DNA of 64,000 bases from NCBI GenBank assembly GCA_965644295.1, contig CBFFRP010000054.1, positions 1 through 64,000 on the forward strand, read 5' to 3'. The position numbers were made by a program, and so were the translations under genes. Within the stretch, counting starts at the first letter, position 1. Each line of letters opens with the position of its first letter. Of the stretch, positions 14,021-47,950 are shown piece after piece. A model generated the notes under the pieces. That model made no database searches. It was not told where the DNA came from and was given only the letters and a program-made list of their open reading frames with translations. Origin of the DNA: Paraphysomonas bandaiensis. Taxonomy: Eukaryota > Protista > Chrysophyceae.

Positions 14021-14116
14021 TTGAAAGTATTTTATTTAGCAATAGGCGTTAAAAGCCTGTACCAATTTTGTAGCTAGATGAATGCTAGTCAGCCTAGTTA
14101 GACCTCTACCTGTAAC
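14021..14116 (-). mobile_element. Extreme 3' tail of retroelement subfamily A1
   Basis: The reverse complement matches 18985-19077 (ggtagaggtcta..ttttaacgcctattgctaaata..actttcaat). Confidence 0.7.
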
Positions 14117-18157: not shown

Positions 18158-19077
18158 GTGTCATATCAATCTAGTCATATCAATCTTAGCTCTCTGCTAA
18201 ATCAGAATCTACCCCATTGGACCACCAATGCGCTACAGTGGCTCTCCAACAGGGCCTGGAGCCCCTCCTTCCCGCAGGTGGAGAGATTCTGGACAGGTAC
18301 CATAACCACTGCACAATTCGAGACGATTTTTGGAGATCACATCCATGAGCCCTTGACACCCCAAGGTCTGCGCAACATTGAAACAGCGGTCATCAGCCTG
18401 CTTCTACCGCTTTTCGCTGCAGCAAAACTAATGATCCAGGATCGAAGTCGAAGATACATTACCTCGCACAAAGGACCCTCTGGGCTACTCCCGCGACCGC
18501 GTCAAAAACGTAGACAGCCATGGAAACGCCCAAGGGTGCTACGATTACTAGGAGTCCGCAGACGAGCCGAGACTGGACCACCGCACACCGCACACACGAA
18601 CCCCACCACCCATACCCACAGGAACATATCACCGTTCCGCATGAAACCCTCAGGACCTCGGCAACGAAGCCGTCTCCGGCAACTCTACCTATGCCTGAGG
18701 CCCAAACGGTGCACTGAGACAACGCCACATTCCAACTCTCCACCCACCTCTCAGCCCACACACCTAGCACTCGGTACACTCAGGACCTTATAATACAGAA
18801 CCCTGTACCTCAGAGCCCGGTGGAACCTCATCCCAAGAGGAGTCCTGGAACACATGATCATGCCGAAACTCACAATCTACATTAAGAACGGAAGTGGTCA
18901 CACCTTGGCGCTTGCAGCGACGCGCAAGCAGCTTCTGTAGCGCTAAATAGTAGGATAATAGAATTTGTGCTGATTATTATAATGGGTAGAGGTCTAAATA
19001 GGCCGTCTAGCATTCAACTAGCCACTACATTGGTGCAGATTTTTAACGCCTATTGCTAAATAATAAGACTTTCAATA
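18158..19077 (+). mobile_element. 3' end of putative non-LTR retroelement (A1): ORF C-terminus plus 3' UTR
   Basis: ORF remnant LQWLSNRAWSPSFPQVERFWTG..LLLPLFAAAKLM followed by the 3' region shared with the 7.4 kb and 14.0 kb copies. No RT core is visible, so the class is inferred. Confidence 0.65.
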
Positions 19078-40436: not shown

Positions 40437-42694
40437 ATGGAAATGTTAACACGTCTTCTTCATTCAGGGATCATCCCATTTGCTCTGATACCAATTACAA
40501 TGACATTTATACGAAGAATGAATCAAACAGTATTGATTAGTAATAAGCAATCTGTTGATCATACAAACAACACTATAGATAAATTATCTGTAACAATTTT
40601 GTATGGGACAACAACAGGAACATCTAAGAAAATGGCTTATGAATTAATGGAGAGGATAGTTGCTTTTGGTAATGTAGTGACTGTAAATATATGCGATATG
40701 AAAGAGTATGATTTGGATTCATTGGAAAGTGAGAATGTTGTGTTGATACTATGCTCTACTTGGACTGGTGGTACAGTCCCTGAATTATGTGAACCATTTA
40801 TGGCTGGTTTACAAGATTTAGCTAATGATTTCAGAGTAAGCAAAAATCTTCTTGACAAAGTGAAGTTTGCTGTTATGGGTCTTGGAGGAAAGGTGTATGG
40901 TGAGAATTTCTGTAAATCGGTGAGTCTATTTCTCTTTTTCTGTATTCTCTTCTTATATATTATCAGTCACTTGATATCCATAACACTTTGGTTTCTCTGG
41001 GGGCATCACCTTTATTAGGGGTGGTATATGGGGATGACGCTAGCGACCTGAGTGCGCGCTTCACTTCTTGGAGTTGCCGAGTTGAGAGTAGCGTTCTTTC
41101 ACTTTGCCCATCAAGTGGGCTGGAGTCACAAGCCCCTGTTTCAACTTCTGGTGGTCGGCGTAATGGAAAAGTCCAACGTCTGAAAGGCAGCGCGAGGAAG
41201 TCTTCCCCACCTTCGGAATCCTGTGGTGACTGTTCATGTGGAGAACCTCCGGTGGAGCCAGCTACGCGCCCGAAGAAAAAGAAGAAGCAGAAAAAAGTTA
41301 TACCTGAAGAGGAGGAACTCGAGGAGGAAGATATTATCAATAATACCTTCGTATGCGATAGTGATAGCGATGAAGAAGGTGGAGTAGTGGAGAGCAAAGG
41401 CGAAGCTGAGGGACTTGTTGATGTCGAAGACCTAGGAACATCCATGGCTAATGCTGAAGAGGAGAGTCGAGCTGTGGGAAGGGAAATGGTGACTAAGCTC
41501 CAGCGCAAAGCCCTGACGAAAGAAGGATATAAAATTATCGGTACTCATAGTGCAGTAAAGATGTGTCGCTGGACGAAGAATCAAATGCGTGGCAGGGGAG
41601 GATGCTATAAACACTCATTTTATGGCATTACCTCATACCAGTGTATGGAAGCAACCCCATCCCTCGCATGTGCTAACAAGTGCGTATTCTGCTGGAGACA
41701 CCACAAAAACCCAGTTGGTACTGAGTGGAGGTGGAAAACGGACTCACCTGATATGATTGTTTCACAAGCCATATCAGAACATCAGGCAATGGTTAATCAA
41801 ATGCGCGGTGTTCCTGGAGTTCTCCCAGAGAGGTTTAAAGAAGCATTTACTGTTCGTCACTGCGCACTTTCTCTTGTCGGTGAACCAATCATGTATCCCC
41901 ACATTAATGAGATGGTAAAGCAGTTGCACGATCGAAAAATCAGTACCTTTCTTGTGACCAACGCGCAGTTTCCTGAGGCTATACGTGATATGGATCCAGT
42001 TACTCAGTTGTATGTCTCTGTAGACGCAGCAACTAGCGAATCAATGAAAGCAATTGACCGTCCATTGTTTAAAGACTTTTGGCAGCGTTTCCGCACATCA
42101 TTGGTGCATATGCGAGAAAAGCGACAGCGAACAGTGTATCGTATGACATTAGTGAAGAGCTGGAATATGGATGAGGTTCAGCAGTATTCTGACCTAATTG
42201 CGGAGGGTTGTCCGGATTTCATAGAAATTAAGGCCGTCACATACTGCGGTAAGTCAGATGCATCCTCCCTGACTATGCAGAATGTTCCATGGCACCACGA
42301 GGTGTGTGACTACGCTGAGGCCATATCAGCCAACCTAAAAGCACGTAATAATAATAACAGCGACGAAGCTGTCTACGTGCCCGGCTACAGTATTGCGACA
42401 GAGCACGAGCACTCATGTTGTGTCCTTCTTGCCAGAGAGGATAAATTCAAAGTAGATGGAGAGTGGTACACATGGATTGACTACAACAAATTCGATGAAT
42501 TGATAGCAGAATACTATGCATCAGGCGGAGAGAAGAAGTTCACCAGTTCAGACTACATGGCCAAGACACCATCGTGGGCTCTGTACAAGTCAGCCGAACG
42601 AGGATTTGATCCCGTTGAGTCTAGATGGCGAAGGAACAAAGCAGGAGCAATTGTTGAGATTGAATACAAGGCCAGTGATTCAGGATGTGGCTAG
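40437..42694 (+). CDS. TYW1: tRNA 4-demethylwyosine synthase (flavodoxin plus radical SAM)
   Basis: Flavodoxin YGTTTGTS; intron 40920-40966; HSAVKMCRWTK, CANKCVFC, HCALSLVGEP and FIEIKAVTYCG. Confidence 0.97.
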
Positions 42695-43034
42695 ATTTAT
42701 TATCGAAATGCCTAAAAGTGCGTATTAATCCCGTTCAGTGTAATTAGCTAAGATCTGTAGGTTGCTGAGTACTGATAACGAATAATAAGACTAGTAGTGG
42801 CATAAATCCAGAAATTTCTTAATATTTAGAGGAATTAGTATTTTCGATCAGTATGTTTACTACTTACTACTTACTGTAACATAATGCCGTTAAAGTTATA
42901 TCTGTACTAAATTATTTCACGGAATATTGAAACTAACGAATATGGAATATTTCGCGGTACACGTTATTAACGAAATGAATTTGGGCTTCTTAATGCATGA
43001 AATACTTAACACTAATGTCAAGACTTCTATCAAC

Positions 43035-43237
43035 TGAAGTCAAGCATCCGGGCTGTTGACCTTAAGGACTCTAAAATCCTGAAGTCAGCAGATGTAATAT
43101 CAACATTCTGCTGGGTCATTGTGTTTGCTTTGAGTGATATAGAGAGTGATATATACACCTTGATGCTTGCGGCGACGTACAAGGTACAAGCAGCTATCGC
43201 AGCGTTAAATAGTAGGATATCAGAGTTAAGCATTAAG
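43035..43237 (+). mobile_element. 3' UTR fragment of retroelement subfamily A2
   Basis: tgaagtcaagcatccgggctgtt..aaatcctgaagtcag..tgcttgcggcgacg..aaatagtaggatatcagagttaagca matches the other A2 copies. Confidence 0.75.
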
Positions 43238-43269
43238 TGTTGAGATCTGAAGATACTATATACTTGCAA

Positions 43270-43750
43270 TTGAGTGCAGTATTATGTGAAATGCAAGCAT
43301 CGAAAGATACATATATATGTATGTAATTAGTAGATTAAATTGTGTAGTCTGAAACTGAAGCAGAAGTTGGTGACTATACAGGATACGATTACTGAGTGTG
43401 TGGTTTGTACACTAAAGTGGTAAATGAATGGTGTTGAACACATCGAATACAACATAGATAGGTTCTTTATCATGTAATGTTTATAATTTCATCTTATCAA
43501 TTGAGAATAGCAAACCTGAGCAAATAATGTCAAACAATTCTGTTATGGTAGCGGATGGTAGTTGTTGTAGGGATGGGGAAGTTGACAAGAAGCTACGGTT
43601 TGACAAGAACCAGGCAGAGTATTTAGCGAGAAATACCCTGATGTCTTGGAGGGGAAGGCAATTTTACCTGCTGATGATCCTGCTAAGGAGGTGTTATCCA
43701 GTGAGATCCTTCATACATTGGTTGATAGGTTCAGAGGCGAGATTGGGAAC
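43270..43750 (+). mobile_element. Possible LTR end plus gag-like start, opposite in orientation to the adjacent pol
   Basis: AT-rich stretch ending tgtcaaaca, then tggtagc and broken ORFs (KKLRFDKN.., EILHTLVDRFRG) abutting the truncated RNase H. Identification is weak. Confidence 0.3.
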
Positions 43751-46700
43751 CACGTGCTCTCTCACCATGTGATACTTAATCTCAATGTACTTCGACTTCT
43801 TGTGAAACACTGGGTTTCGGCCAAACTCTGACTGTCGATGAAGAATGGTGTGGGCTTGATAAGCCTCAACTTAATCTCACCCGTCACCCTCCGAACCCAC
43901 AGCACTTCTTGAAGACCCGAGTAAATACACTGATACTCAGACTGCATGCTTGACGTTGCCACTGTCGTCTGCAATTTGGACTGCCAGACTATATAGACCC
44001 TCCCGCTGCAAATATACCCAACGTACCCCGATGTGGACTTCCTGGACAGCTGGTCTCCCGCCCAATCCGCGTCAGTAAACATATTATGATGGAAGTCGAA
44101 CCGTCTACTCCCATATTGAATCCCTTTGTCAACAGAACCACGAATATATTGCCATACGTATGCTAATATAGCTTGCATACTTCAATATTCACCTTGTTAC
44201 TGAACCGAGACAGTACTCCCACCGCATAAGCAATCTCCGGCCTCGTGTTCATGGATAGATATAGTAATGCACCTATCAGCGGCCGATATGAGAAGTTATC
44301 TACTGTAAGCTGTTCCTCCTCGGTATGCGCATGCCGCGCCCCTTTTGCCACTAAATCCATTGCTTCTGCAGGTAGAGGACTCTTCAGTTCCTTTCACGGT
44401 GGCCCAAGATACTTCTCAAACTTTTCTAAGATCTTAGCCGCATATACTGATTGGTCAAGACGAATATACTTTTTGGCGTCCTTGTGACTCGAACATTCAG
44501 AAAATGTTCCATCTCGTCCATGTCCTACATATCAAACCGGGCACACAGTTGAGCTTTAATATCCTTCACTATGTTGACATACATCACGACCTAAAACTAG
44601 GATATATCATCCACATAATATATCGTTAATAATACCAATTCATCGCCCTTATACTGATAATACAAACACGGGTCTAATACACATGGTTTAAAAAATGCAT
44701 ATATCGTATAAATTTATTCAATGTTTTCCACCATGACCGCGGGGGGCTCCGAAGCCGTATAACTGCTTCTTCAACGTAAAGCAGTACCCCTCAGGCAGCT
44801 GAAAGTCCGGAGTTGCTATCATATATACGCCCCCTCTATATCTGCATATAGAAATTATGTGTTAGACGCATCCAGTTGATGAATTACCATGTTCATCACG
44901 AAGGCTATGGCGATTAACAGTCGCACTGTTACCCCCTTAACAACGGGAGCGAAATGGTTCGCCCAACCACTCGACTGCTGTCCACAACCGATTGCTACAA
45001 GACGAGCCTTATATCGGCGGACCTCTCTTTCCTTATCGTACTTCTTTCCATAATAGACGTACTTGGAGTGCAGTGGGACGACTCCGTCCGGTATACGAGT
45101 CACCTCCATGGTGTCTCGCTTCGCCAGACCCTCTCGCTTCGCCAGACCCTCTCGCTCTCTACACGGCGAGCTCGTCTCCACTCCCTGTGCTTGGCACTCT
45201 CCAAGGACTCACGATGTGTCTGAGAGGCACTGTCGACTCTTCCGCTGACATCCACACTGAGTCTGCCTCCTGTAAAAGGTAACTCACATCACCCTCATCA
45301 CTCAAATGATGGATTTGTCTTAACACTGACACATTCGTGACCGTCCTTGGAGCTCTTGCGCGCTTGCCGTGCGGATGATTCTCGGCAGGATCCGTTCCCC
45401 CGAAGGTGATGCTGAGTCAGCCTGGGGCTGCACCTGCCCACTTTCCGACTACTGTGGCATCACTCCGCTGATACCGCCGTCACGGTTGTCAGTAACTCTG
45501 GCCCTAACCACACTCTGCGCAAGATCCTCTGTCATCTTCTTGATGTCAGCAATGTGAATAGGGGTCTACATGTAGTCTATATCAGGTGTCGACACACATG
45601 TGGAAGTGCATTCTCTGATTAGTAGTAGTTTTCTGCTATGTACACTGCAACTAATATATGGTGTAGATAACAATGTGTAGAATGTAAAAATATAGAGATT
45701 TATTATATGTGTACTGTACGTACGTGTGTAGCGTTTTCATACTTCGCTTCATGCACATCCTCTGGATTACAGTGCATTGTAATTTCTCCACTTATGAACC
45801 TGGTCACCAGTAACCAACGACCGGTATCCCACAATAAGCCCCTTCCTTATCACCACTCTGTTGGTCGTATAGCAGAGCACCGTCCTCATGGTGCTTAACC
45901 TCAAACTCACCCGGTTGGCGAGCCTTGGGGTTTATAGCCACTTGAGCCTCCTCCAGCTCTCTATAATAATCTTGAGACCTCTCAGGTACCGATTCATCAA
46001 ACAATACATGTACAGAGTGTACTGCGGTATCCCCCACTTGCACCTTGTATCCTTTTCGATCAGCTGGATACCCTATGAAGTAACCTGTCTTTGCTTTGTT
46101 CTCCCAGTCCTTCCTCCTGTCGGTCTTAGGTGTTAGCACATATGCTTTACATCCCCATTTCCGTAGCCACGATAGGCTGGGAACGCTCCCCCCTGGGACA
46201 CATTCATATGGAGACATCCATCCTTGCCACGTCCGATTGGCATTCGTCGCACAATGTAACATGCAGTTGATACTTATCAAACCAGTATGACTTTGGAAGT
46301 CCGGATGTCGTCAACATCGTCAGTCTCATCTCCTCAATTGTTCGGAATTTCCTCTCAGACACCGCGTTGAGCTCTGGCGTGTCTCTCGTTGTATGTGACA
46401 CCCGAATCCCATATCGCTGCAACAGATACTCTCTTATCTGCTGACTAATAAGTTCGGATCCTCCATCGGCATGATACTCTCGTACTTCACTAAATGAACC
46501 TCACATAAGTGTCGTAGACATTTGAAAACTTCATCTCCGCTTCGAGTCTTTAAACCATACTCCCATATCATCTTTGTCGCCAAGTCCGTAAATATAAGTA
46601 CATACTTATAACCCTGTCTTGATTCACAATTCAAGTACACTGAGATATCAGCTGTCACCCTTTCCAGAAACCTGACGGCGGCACGGGACAATGAGGAGCT
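43750..46700 (-). mobile_element. Decayed Ty1/copia LTR retrotransposon pol (integrase-RT-RNase H)
   Basis: Integrase ADISV..HADGG..PELNAVSER and WGCKAY..GYFIGY; RT YKARLVA, QLD and YVDDI; RNase H FTDADWAG..RKSTSGY, SSMQSEY and IEIKYH. Many frameshifts. Confidence 0.95.
45567..45781. repeat. Inverted copy of the cyclophilin 3' flank (47090-47302) inserted in the copia remnant
   Basis: 215 nt that are the reverse complement of 47090-47302. By eye they differ by two substitutions and one 2-nt indel. Confidence 0.95.
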
Positions 46701-46934
46701 AAGCGCTGTCAGGTTTCTGGAAAGGGTGACAGTTGACATCTCAGTGTACCTGAATTGTGAATCCAGACAAGGCTATAAGTATGTACTTCTATTGGCGACA
46801 AAGATGATATGGGAGTATGGTTTAAAGACTCGAAGCGGAGATGAAGTTTTCAAATGTCTACGACACTTATGTGAGGTTCATTTAGTGAAGTACGAGGGGT
46901 GGAACCGTACTGTAGAGTATCATGCCGATGGAGG
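46459..46934. repeat. Fold-back (head-to-head) duplication of the integrase core
   Basis: Arms 46459-46680 and 46704-46934 around a 23-nt loop. ORFs 46434-46739(-) and 46726-46956(+) encode nearly the same peptide. Confidence 0.95.
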
Positions 46935-47089
46935 AGAATATCTAGGCCAGCAATAATTAGCGCAAAGTACTCATATTTCATTACGAATCCTTACTCTCGA
47001 CATACTCGGTTCTTTCCGATATATTCAACAGAGTTGATAGTTGATGTAATTCCAGAATAGTAAGCTCAACATGGGTGTAGTAGAAGGAA

Positions 47090-47302
47090 TACAATGCACT
47101 GTAATCCAGTGGATGTGCATGAAGCGAAGTATGAAAACGCTACACACGTACGTACAGTACACATATAATAAATCTCTATATTTTTACATTCTACACATTG
47201 TTATCTACACCATATATTAGTTGCAGTACATAGAAGAAAACTACTACTAATCAGAGAATGCACTTCCACATGTGTGTCGACACCTGATATAGACTACATG
47301 TA
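47090..47302. repeat. Source arm of the outer inverted repeat (cyclophilin 3' UTR/flank)
   Basis: Begins 16 nt past the cyclophilin stop codon and is complementary to 45567-45781. Confidence 0.9.
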
Positions 47303-47317
47303 AACCGTACATTCAAT

Positions 47318-47950
47318 TCATAATGGATACGCAACACCGCAATCTGAAATCGTTAGTTCTTCTGTTGGCTGGCCACTCTCAGTTCCAAACGTATTGATCT
47401 TGTGGAGTACTTCAAAGCTCTCTTCGCTACAGAGACATCCAAACACAACACACCTGTTATCAAGGTCTTTAATTTCTGCAAATGTAACTTGAAAGAGTGA
47501 GCCATTTGTATCGGGCCCCATGTTACACATAGAGAGTACACCGGGACCACAGTGCCGAAGAATAAAGTTTTCGTCTTTAAAAAAACCTCCTCCATATATT
47601 GACTTTGAACACGCCCCACCTTCGCCAAGTAGGTCGCCCCCAACAAATGTGAGATCACTGGTTACCCTACATATCACTAATAATCACATGATTGCATCAA
47701 CAGCAAAATATCTTTACCGGTGAAGTTTAGTTCCTTTATACCGATACGGTACACCATCATCACCAACTCCACGTGCTCCAGAAATCAACGATAAGAAGTT
47801 TGCACAGGCAACAGGACATAAATCTCTTCTAAGTTCAAAGTATAATCTTCCCAACAGGACTGGTTCGCTTATTTTGGATGTTAACTGTAGTTTACCACCA
47901 CCGGTTGTTATATCCATATATACAACGGGATTCTCATCTCTACTAGACAT
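47318..47950 (-). CDS. Cyclophilin-type peptidyl-prolyl isomerase, divergent active site
   Basis: NPVVYMDI, CPVACANF, YKGTKLHR, GGD..SIYGG.F.DENF and NMGPDTNGS; intron 47667-47717. Confidence 0.93.

Follow-up and report, generated by a model that had tools for sequence, protein, structure and literature searches.

A dead Ty1/copia remnant lying between convergent genes for TYW1 (plus strand) and a CypA-like cyclophilin (minus strand) in the marine protist Paraphysomonas bandaiensis contains two nested inverted repeats, and we think it rather probable (roughly 0.6) that these are scars left when DNA-level repair, or template switching during replication, scrambled the element, and not an evolved device. 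Since the junctions show the signs of DNA repair, selection need not be invoked to explain the repeats. In the evolutionary account favored here, a copia element would have inserted into the roughly 0.9-kb space separating the two genes, and the inner repeat would have formed as ~255 bp of integrase sequence underwent fold-back inverted duplication around a 23-nt single-copy spacer, with the loss of everything 5' of the break. Gene conversion would later have homogenized the inner arms in part, leaving an identical tract of 105 bp. For the outer repeat, a break in copia pol would have been filled with an inverted copy of about 220 bp from the cyclophilin 3' flank, which lies 1.3 kb away, the ends being joined at microhomologies. 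Small RNAs from the locus, if there are any, we rate as a by-product.

The initial annotation of this DNA had placed a dead copia between convergent TYW1 and cyclophilin genes, and Pfam domains confirm the arrangement, with TYW1 on the plus strand and both copia pol and cyclophilin on the minus strand. The main exon of TYW1 (tRNA wybutosine synthesis; 40988-42694, plus strand), with matches to Wyosine_form (3.2e-21) and Radical_SAM (4.9e-13), converges on the locus. The annotation had also taken the region from 43035 onward as copia, but copia begins at 43238: the sequence at 43034-43237 is a copy of a different, abundant dispersed repeat of ~200 bp (1780 candidate places, of which 40 were scored at 69-82% identity), in which a hairpin fold was looked for and not found (z -0.35). 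On the far side, the cyclophilin gene (47318-47950, minus strand) consists of exon 1 (47950 to ~47718), a GT-AG intron of ~51 nt and exon 2 (~47666 to 47318, with a TGA stop at 47318-47320), the splice sites having been read by eye. Searched against Pfam separately and not as a joined model, exon 1 matches Pro_isomerase over profile positions 9-44 and exon 2 over positions 42-159 of 159; exon 2 also matches cyclophilin A chains (E 7e-25). The predicted product is a cyclophilin-type peptidyl-prolyl isomerase with the domain extending over the whole protein.

The remnant is 86-97% identical to 5.3-kb family elements that have 293-bp LTRs and a 5-bp target-site duplication, and its predicted domain order on the minus strand, integrase (46739-45804) before reverse transcriptase (45181-44855), is that of Ty1/copia. 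The Pfam matches on this strand are RVT_2 at 44855-45181 (1e-13), SH3_retrovirus at 45804-46280 (2.1e-17) and a weak rve match at 46434-46739 (1.2e-4, below Pfam's cut-off). An intact element was considered and rejected, as there is a single LTR, inverted relative to pol, while protease, 3' LTR and target-site duplication are absent; gag is represented by its first residues only and the pol ORFs do not exceed 158 aa. The annotation was therefore right to call the copia dead. Rather than a single minus-strand fragment, the remnant is a five-junction mosaic of sense and antisense pieces, with orientation switches at three of the five junctions.

From the left, the 5' LTR (~43238-43545, beginning TGTTGAG as in the family copies) and the primer-site/leader region together occupy 43238-43633 on the plus strand (89% to canonical positions 1-378); they run against the direction of the pol body, such that the remnant's own LTR points into antisense pol. 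Sense sequence from the leader and the start of gag follows at 43646-43748 (plus strand; 97% to canonical positions 548-650), and ~170 bp of the canonical element that would separate these two segments have been lost. At 43741-43748 the sense leader/gag meets the antisense 3' end of pol across an 8-bp microhomology, GATTGGGA, which is present at the break in both source sequences. The RNase H and reverse transcriptase part of pol then runs through 43741-45565 (minus strand; 92% to canonical positions 4699-2917), its ORFs fragmented by stops and frameshifts, and the integrase part, including the left inner arm, through 45786-46680 (minus strand; 89% to canonical positions 2910-1984). A sense integrase fragment at 46682-46935 (plus strand; 86% to canonical positions 1962-2224) carries the right inner arm, with protein-level similarity to integrase extending to ~46953. 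The adjoining 46954-47089 is unique non-copia sequence with no other match in the genome and no similarity to integrase, most simply the native downstream flank of the cyclophilin gene.

An inner fold-back nested within an outer inverted repeat had been described previously, and we recovered both. For a single repeat of this kind, chance gives an expectation of ~1e-32 over the window (the whole 64-kb stretch analyzed), and the window holds no other close inverted repeats of at least 60 nt save one 79-nt pair at 14032/18985. The inner pair, 46458-46680 and 46704-46935, is separated by a 23-nt loop. Its core arms (46479-46680 and 46704-46896) are 100% identical over 105 nt and 91% identical over 90 nt, and past a 19-bp indel the arms reach 46458 and 46935. 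When both arms were aligned to three copies of the family, the fold-back point and loop (46681-46703) proved to consist of copia sequence continuous with the plus-strand arm only; the arms thus surround a short single-copy spacer that continues one of them, the arrangement of a fold-back duplication. Inverted microhomology at the boundary, which has been blurred by later substitutions, amounts to at most three paired bases (GCG/CGC, 46678-46680 with 46704-46706). The arms have ~20 derived differences from the family in common and are, on this comparison, sister sequences, while the changes private to one or the other comprise 8 substitutions over 90 bp and two deletions, of 9 bp and 19 bp, that fall in different arms. 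The inner structure is old, to judge from these private indels and the 9% divergence beside the loop. Divergence is heterogeneous within the inner arms (8/90 versus 0/105, p=0.0017), and it differs between the outer and inner pairs (3/219 versus 8/90, p=0.003). With a spacer of 23 nt, a near-palindrome exceeding 200 bp ought to be unstable and, as a point against the repeats being scars, its long survival and the homogenized tract could reflect selection for pairing.

The outer pair was first detected at 45563-45792 and 47079-47306 and, in a gapped alignment, spans 45561-45781 and 47090-47308 with three substitutions and one 2-bp indel in ~219 bp. The earlier observation that one of its arms is the cyclophilin 3' flank holds: the right arm (47090-47308, minus strand) begins 10-13 nt past the stop codon and is 3' flank or UTR, and the left arm (45561-45781) is an inverted copy of it within copia pol. 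Both copies of this sequence in the 62.6-Mb genome are those at the locus. The left arm is missing from all of the ~35 family copies scored, where its copia flanks lie ~6 bp apart, and about that much copia sequence has been replaced here by an insert whose donor is 1.3 kb away. Microhomology at the ends of the left arm amounts to ~4 bp on the left (GTTT/GGT) and, on the right, to ~10 bp of imperfect match, and no target-site duplication was found there, whereas canonical copies carry one of 5 bp. These features point to a templated insertion by microhomology-mediated template switching, and parsimony suggests copying from the right arm to the left. An empty ancestral site was sought, but the genome offered no second haplotype and the metagenomes no close relative. 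A Foldback/MITE-type DNA transposon at 45561-47308 was also considered and rejected, as the arms occur only here, there is no duplication and copia is continuous across the left arm. Templated inverted insertions, and the fold-back signature of a spacer with short inverted microhomology, are established outcomes of repair (PMC3907307, PMC11724301).

Two other origins for these junctions deserve consideration. The inner repeat might derive from two copies of one old copia subfamily, one nested in the other in opposite orientation, from which deletions left integrase arms, the center of the long palindrome being lost through a hairpin and the head-to-head arms later being partly homogenized. This is possible though doubtful: the order of the plus-strand pieces (LTR, leader and integrase fragment) is what a single element would give, the minus-strand pieces could likewise belong to a second element, and the 9% arm difference beside the loop would also fit, but in both copies the truncation would have to lie within 22 bp of a single integrase position, at least six events are needed, the shared derived differences require the copies to be at the least very close relatives, and no further head-to-head pair was seen among the 40 sites scored of 88 candidate integrase sites. 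Amplified and long-read libraries are also known to generate palindromic junctions artefactually, such that fold-back chimeric reads or mis-joins between copia copies could in principle have produced the inversions. It is nevertheless highly improbable that the structure is an assembly chimera, as the arms differ by private substitutions and by indels of 2, 9 and 19 bp, the segments are 86-97% identical to active copies that are themselves near-identical, where a mis-join would give about 100%, and the one known contig end, at the start of the window, is over 43 kb away.

The repair account leaves room for RNA from either strand, which could originate from cyclophilin read-through (minus) or from TYW1 read-through or the remnant's 5' LTR (plus). 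It had been proposed that cyclophilin read-through would fold into two long duplexes, and the in silico fold agrees, with predicted duplexes of 215 and ~210 pairs and an MFE of -1018 kcal/mol against -486±10 kcal/mol for shuffles. Plus-strand RNA folds equally well, two duplexes of ~210 bp being predicted from either strand, and the inner stem is an inverted duplication of transposon integrase sequence predicted to form long dsRNA (~210 pairs). The genome encodes a Dicer (a 1679-aa ORF with Helicase_C, Dicer_dimer and two RNase III domains), two Argonautes (ArgoN-PAZ-Piwi genes) and two RdRP loci, and RNA crossing the locus would therefore probably be diced. What the products would recognize is another matter. 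In the inner stem, 7-9% of 21-mers match the active family perfectly and 33-42% with no more than two mismatches, compared with 26-36% perfect matches for the antisense pol body, and the outer stem contains no copia sequence and no 21-mers matching the family. Predicted small RNAs from the outer stem would match the cyclophilin 3' UTR itself, and those from the inner stem would match active copia poorly. The family has at least 40 copies in the genome, and LTRs that are 99.7-100% identical in the three copies examined suggest that it was recently active; with such copy number and LTR identity it does not look silenced.

The initial annotation had read the locus as a hairpin-RNA silencer, and its structural premises (the repeats, the arm from the cyclophilin flank, the predicted fold and the RNAi genes) stand, while the silencing step itself is weakened by the poor target match, the active family, the length of read-through that it demands and the repair marks. 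In its original form, minus-strand read-through from the cyclophilin promoter would fold and be processed by Dicer into siRNAs that silence copia in trans and feed back on the cyclophilin mRNA, making the locus a selected host silencer resembling Mu killer. The right arm's position just after the stop codon, the fold of the minus-strand RNA, the complete RNAi gene set and the persistence and partial homogenization of the repeat are all in its favor, as is the silencing of a target in Phaeodactylum tricornutum by a 240-bp inverted repeat placed between stop codon and terminator (PMC2724275). We nevertheless judge it quite unlikely, as so few stem 21-mers match a family that is abundant with near-identical LTRs, putative read-through of at least 0.86 kb past the cyclophilin stop for the inner stem and at least 1.76 kb for the outer would be required, the outer stem would hit the host gene's own 3' UTR, and Mu killer silencing was not associated with read-through transcripts from the flanking gene (PMC3440606). 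It is also conceivable, if unlikely, that the driver is on the other strand, with the 5' LTR or TYW1 read-through yielding a plus-strand RNA that would be antisense to ~2.9 kb of copia pol, include both hairpins and end antisense to cyclophilin; antisense pol RNA, and not the hairpins, would then be the main source of anti-copia small RNAs. The LTR and leader do face antisense pol, whose 21-mers are the better matched to the family, the plus-strand fold is as good, silencing by Mu killer went with antisense RNAs initiated at a promoter within that locus (PMC3440606), and in a diatom antisense constructs worked as well as inverted repeats (PMC2724275); but the LTR, whose promoter activity is putative, has just 89% identity to those of active copies, part of the leader is gone, and the family again appears recently active. 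It is tempting to speculate that a two-stem hairpin in the 3' region of a housekeeping-type gene has been kept by selection, hence the homogenized tract, and that, transcribed from cyclophilin or a captive LTR, it gives siRNAs that restrain active copia and tune cyclophilin through its own 3' UTR, but we hold this to be improbable. Were the locus a selected silencer, it would be the first like Mu killer shown outside plants and animals and would couple transposon defense to host-gene dosage. If small RNAs are made at all, it would be a natural hairpin or antisense trigger in a little-studied stramenopile and a handle on whether endogenous RNAi polices retrotransposons in such protists, with both stems diagnostic, as the outer arm is genome-unique and the inner arms have private variants.

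A small-RNA silencer role is plausible, and would be of a kind already known. The closest case is Mu killer of maize, in which part of a transposon gene has been rearranged and duplicated in inverted orientation beside a host gene, and which is proposed to give hairpin or antisense RNA and siRNAs against the active family (PMC3440606). The locus here is likewise a rearranged transposon inverted duplication adjoining a host gene. Mu killer, however, is derived from a DNA transposon, MuDR; its ~1.3-kb arms are nearly identical to the target, and it is a genetically proven dominant silencer, whereas here the element is a copia, the transposon-derived stem is ~230 bp and 86-89% identical to the active family, the second stem is a host 3' UTR and any transcript or silencing is putative. 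Drosophila hpRNA loci are also inverted duplications, whose long-duplex transcripts are diced into endo-siRNAs that repress parent or selfish genes (PMC10317233). The predicted transcript here would form similarly long duplexes, but it is small-RNA data and target relationships that define the fly loci, and the outer stem here would target the adjacent host gene and not a selfish one. In P. tricornutum, an inverted repeat of ~240 bp 3' of the stop codon of an expressed gene led to silencing and CG methylation of homologous DNA, and antisense alone did equally well (PMC2724275). The stem size, the place after a host stop codon and the stramenopile setting are alike, but those constructs were artificial, with perfect target identity and a strong promoter, and the locus here is in a different stramenopile lineage.

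Repair of the FoSTeS/MMBIR type leaves a single-copy spacer flanked by inverted arms, drops the sequence past the break, and shows short junction microhomologies and insertion of nearby sequence in inverted orientation (PMC3907307, PMC11724301); a spacer of this kind, sequence loss, junction microhomologies and an inverted insert are likewise found here. The scale is intermediate, with a 23-nt spacer, 255-bp arms and a 220-bp insert from 1.3 kb away, whereas yeast events are mostly 5-34 bp and human spacers 0.8-70 kb, and relative to known fold-backs the microhomology at the fold-back point is slight and has been obscured by later substitutions. The main present value of the locus would be as a well-resolved case of fold-back and templated-insertion repair on a transposon insert, in which repair scars can give a 'silencer-like' anatomy with no need for selection.

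The inverted repeats that lie between the convergent TYW1 and cyclophilin genes are probably (we would put it at roughly 0.6) the scars of repair or template switching in a dead copia element, which may incidentally yield small RNAs. The source assembly comprises 62.6 Mb in 669 contigs, and the window covers the initial 64 kb of contig C54. Pfam matches place TYW1 on the plus strand, and copia RVT_2 and integrase SH3 domains together with a weak rve match on the minus strand, as is the cyclophilin, in agreement with the arrangement described in the initial annotation. The cyclophilin, profile-searched one exon at a time with splice sites placed by eye, runs from 47318 onward (47318-47950, minus strand), with its stop codon at 47318-47320 and a GT-AG intron of ~51 nt. 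It is CypA-like and carries substitutions at several sites that, aligned by eye, we take to match catalytic or ligand-binding positions of human cyclophilin A, such as Q63, W121 and H126; as an isomerase it may be divergent or inactive.

The remnant can be mapped on full-length resident copies of a 5.3 kb copia family with at least 40 genome copies (a 254-bp integrase probe gave 88 candidate places). This family is young and looks recently active, to judge from the three copies examined (L015, 4367-9660; L016, 4550-9843; L017, 2821-8117), in which the 293-297-bp LTRs with TG...TTA ends are 99.7-100% identical within each element, the 5-bp target-site duplication is kept, and the gag-pol frame is uninterrupted in at least one. 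A primer site of TGGTAGCGGATGG type immediately follows the family LTR. Individual copies have private frameshifts, and an integrase-RT frame change seen in one canonical copy only was rejected as a family feature because it is private to that copy. A search for closer subfamily members found one other degenerate copy (L035, G000:C435:17000-26999), also old and internally deleted, which is 88-92% identical to the window copy and lacks the fold-back.

Read along the plus strand, the remnant begins with a 5' LTR plus leader in sense orientation (43238-43633, 89% to the family) and the leader and start of gag, also sense (43646-43748, 97%), which meet antisense RNase H and RT (43741-45565, 92%) at junction J1, an 8-bp microhomology, GATTGGGA, at 43741-43748. 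There follow the left outer arm A (45561-45781, not copia), antisense integrase (45786-46680, 89%), the fold-back J3 with its 23-nt loop (46681-46703), a sense integrase fragment (46682-46935, 86%), a unique non-copia stretch, D (46954-47089), and the right outer arm A' (47090-47308, likewise not copia). D was considered as diverged integrase and rejected, as similarity ends by ~46953. Of gag only the first residues survive; protease and the 3' LTR, with the ~300 bp preceding it, are absent, and what is left of pol is split into short ORFs. The initial annotation correctly recognized a dead copia here but started the locus at 43035, whereas copia begins at 43238. The intervening 43034-43237 is one copy of a dispersed ~200-bp repeat, very abundant and unrelated to copia, and directly adjoins the copia LTR; the repeat has 1780 candidate places (copies scored were 69-82% identical), and its kin also lie 0.1-0.7 kb from two further copia insertions (L015 and L016). 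The copy at 43034-43237 has no hairpin fold (z -0.35), and the repeat therefore seems SINE-like rather than MITE-like.

The repeat finder returned an outer inverted repeat at 45563-45792 and 47079-47306, refined by gapped alignment to 45561-45781 and 47090-47308 with three substitutions and one 2-bp indel, and an inner one at 46479-46680 and 46704-46896, the arms of which are 100% identical over 105 nt and 91% over 90 nt and extend to 46458 and 46935 once a 19-bp indel is crossed. Some 1e-32 would be expected by chance for one such repeat. The previously proposed nesting of an integrase fold-back within an outer repeat is thus confirmed to within a few bases, as is the identity of one outer arm with the cyclophilin 3' flank, A' beginning 10-13 nt past the stop. 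Elsewhere in the 64-kb window there are no close inverted repeats of 60 nt or more except a 79-nt pair (14032-14110 and 18985-19063, 87% identical, 4.9 kb apart), which apparently links two retroelement copies. In Rfam, the loop region at the tip of the inner hairpin (46642-46742) gave sub-threshold matches to a miRNA precursor model and nothing else (mir-5681 on both strands, at 34 bits where the gathering score is 88); since any long hairpin is expected to produce such matches, they are not evidence of a miRNA.

The repeats are, on the evidence of their sequence, not an assembly artefact. Both pairs of arms differ by substitutions and indels, and each copia segment is 86-97% identical to near-identical active copies where a mis-join would give ~100%; the known contig end lies over 43 kb away. 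None of ten ORFs, of which four cross junctions, had an exact match on record, a result that is uninformative on the junctions.

The inner arms share ~20 derived differences relative to the three family copies and are therefore sister sequences. The 23 nt of the loop are copia as well, in continuity with the plus arm only, and the whole looks like a fold-back inverted duplication, in which a short single-copy spacer remains and everything beyond the break is lost, a form that is known (PMC3907307). An origin from two nested copia copies in opposite orientation, later trimmed by deletions, is unlikely, as it needs two truncations no more than 22 bp apart as well as more events. Changes private to one arm or the other amount to eight substitutions in the loop-proximal 90 bp, together with losses of 9 bp from the plus arm and 19 bp from the minus arm. 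Divergence is uneven within the arms (8/90 versus 0/105, p=0.0017), and the outer arms also differ from this loop-proximal part (3/219 versus 8/90, p=0.003), from which we infer that the inner event is old and was followed by gene conversion of the 105-bp tract, and that the outer pair is younger or was also converted.

The simplest account of the outer repeat would be a templated insertion, in which a break in copia pol was mended from the cyclophilin 3' flank, 1.3 kb off, ~220 bp of which were copied in inverted orientation; breaks in yeast yield outcomes of this sort (PMC11724301). In all family copies scored (~35), the copia stretches that flank A here are separated by ~6 bp; the microhomology where A meets copia is ~4 bp at its left end and an imperfect ~10-bp zone at its right end, and A' runs contiguously into D and towards the cyclophilin stop. 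A direction of copying from A' to A is suggested by parsimony, as no ancestral allele was found: the genome contains no second haplotype or paralogous flank, and one metagenome scan gave a single 47%-identical cyclophilin with neither a similar flank nor TYW1. A foldback or MITE-type transposon spanning 45561-47308 was rejected, given that the genome has just two copies of the arm sequence, both at this locus, that there is no target-site duplication, and that copia is continuous across A. Duplication of the arm through a staggered-break inversion was rejected because reversing the inversion would part copia positions 2917 and 2910, neighbours in every copy scored. Nor is it simplest to suppose that reverse transcriptase switched templates onto cyclophilin mRNA and so captured it, since in the copia sense orientation the arm reads antisense to the mRNA, and the cDNA would have needed to integrate beside the same gene.

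It was originally proposed that cyclophilin read-through would fold into two long duplexes and give rise to anti-copia siRNAs, and this is borne out in part. RNA over 45540-47320 is predicted to fold, from either strand, with 215 outer and ~210 inner pairs (-1018 kcal/mol for the minus strand and -960 for the plus, versus -486±10 for shuffles). None of the outer stem is copia, and any small RNAs cut from it would therefore correspond to the cyclophilin's own 3' UTR. Dicing of such RNA is a reasonable premise, as the genome encodes a 1679-aa Dicer with Helicase_C, Dicer_dimer and two RNase III domains, two ArgoN-PAZ-Piwi Argonautes and two RdRPs, and as, in another stramenopile, the target is silenced and CG methylation induced when a 240-bp inverted repeat, or simply an antisense fragment, is inserted between stop codon and terminator (PMC2724275). 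Small RNAs, if made, could be assigned unambiguously, the outer arm sequence being unique to this locus and the inner arms having private variants.

That the locus is a selected hairpin or antisense silencer driven by the cyclophilin seems improbable: read-through would have to reach at least 0.86 kb past the stop to take in the inner stem, and 1.76 kb to take in the outer one. A selected silencer driven instead by the LTR or TYW1 is improbable, even though the remnant's own LTR points into antisense pol, the 21-mers of which match family copies perfectly in 26-36% of cases. Against either version, perfect matches to family copies make up only 7-9% of the inner-stem 21-mers (33-42% at two mismatches or fewer), and the copia family looks recently active. 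Were a selected silencer nonetheless to be operating here, it would join known kinds such as Mu killer, the rearranged transposon locus of maize that silences its family, and the hpRNA loci of Drosophila. Mu killer is the closest precedent, and one that lends itself to the LTR-driven version, as its silencing was associated with antisense transcripts of an internal promoter and not with read-through from a flanking gene (PMC3440606).
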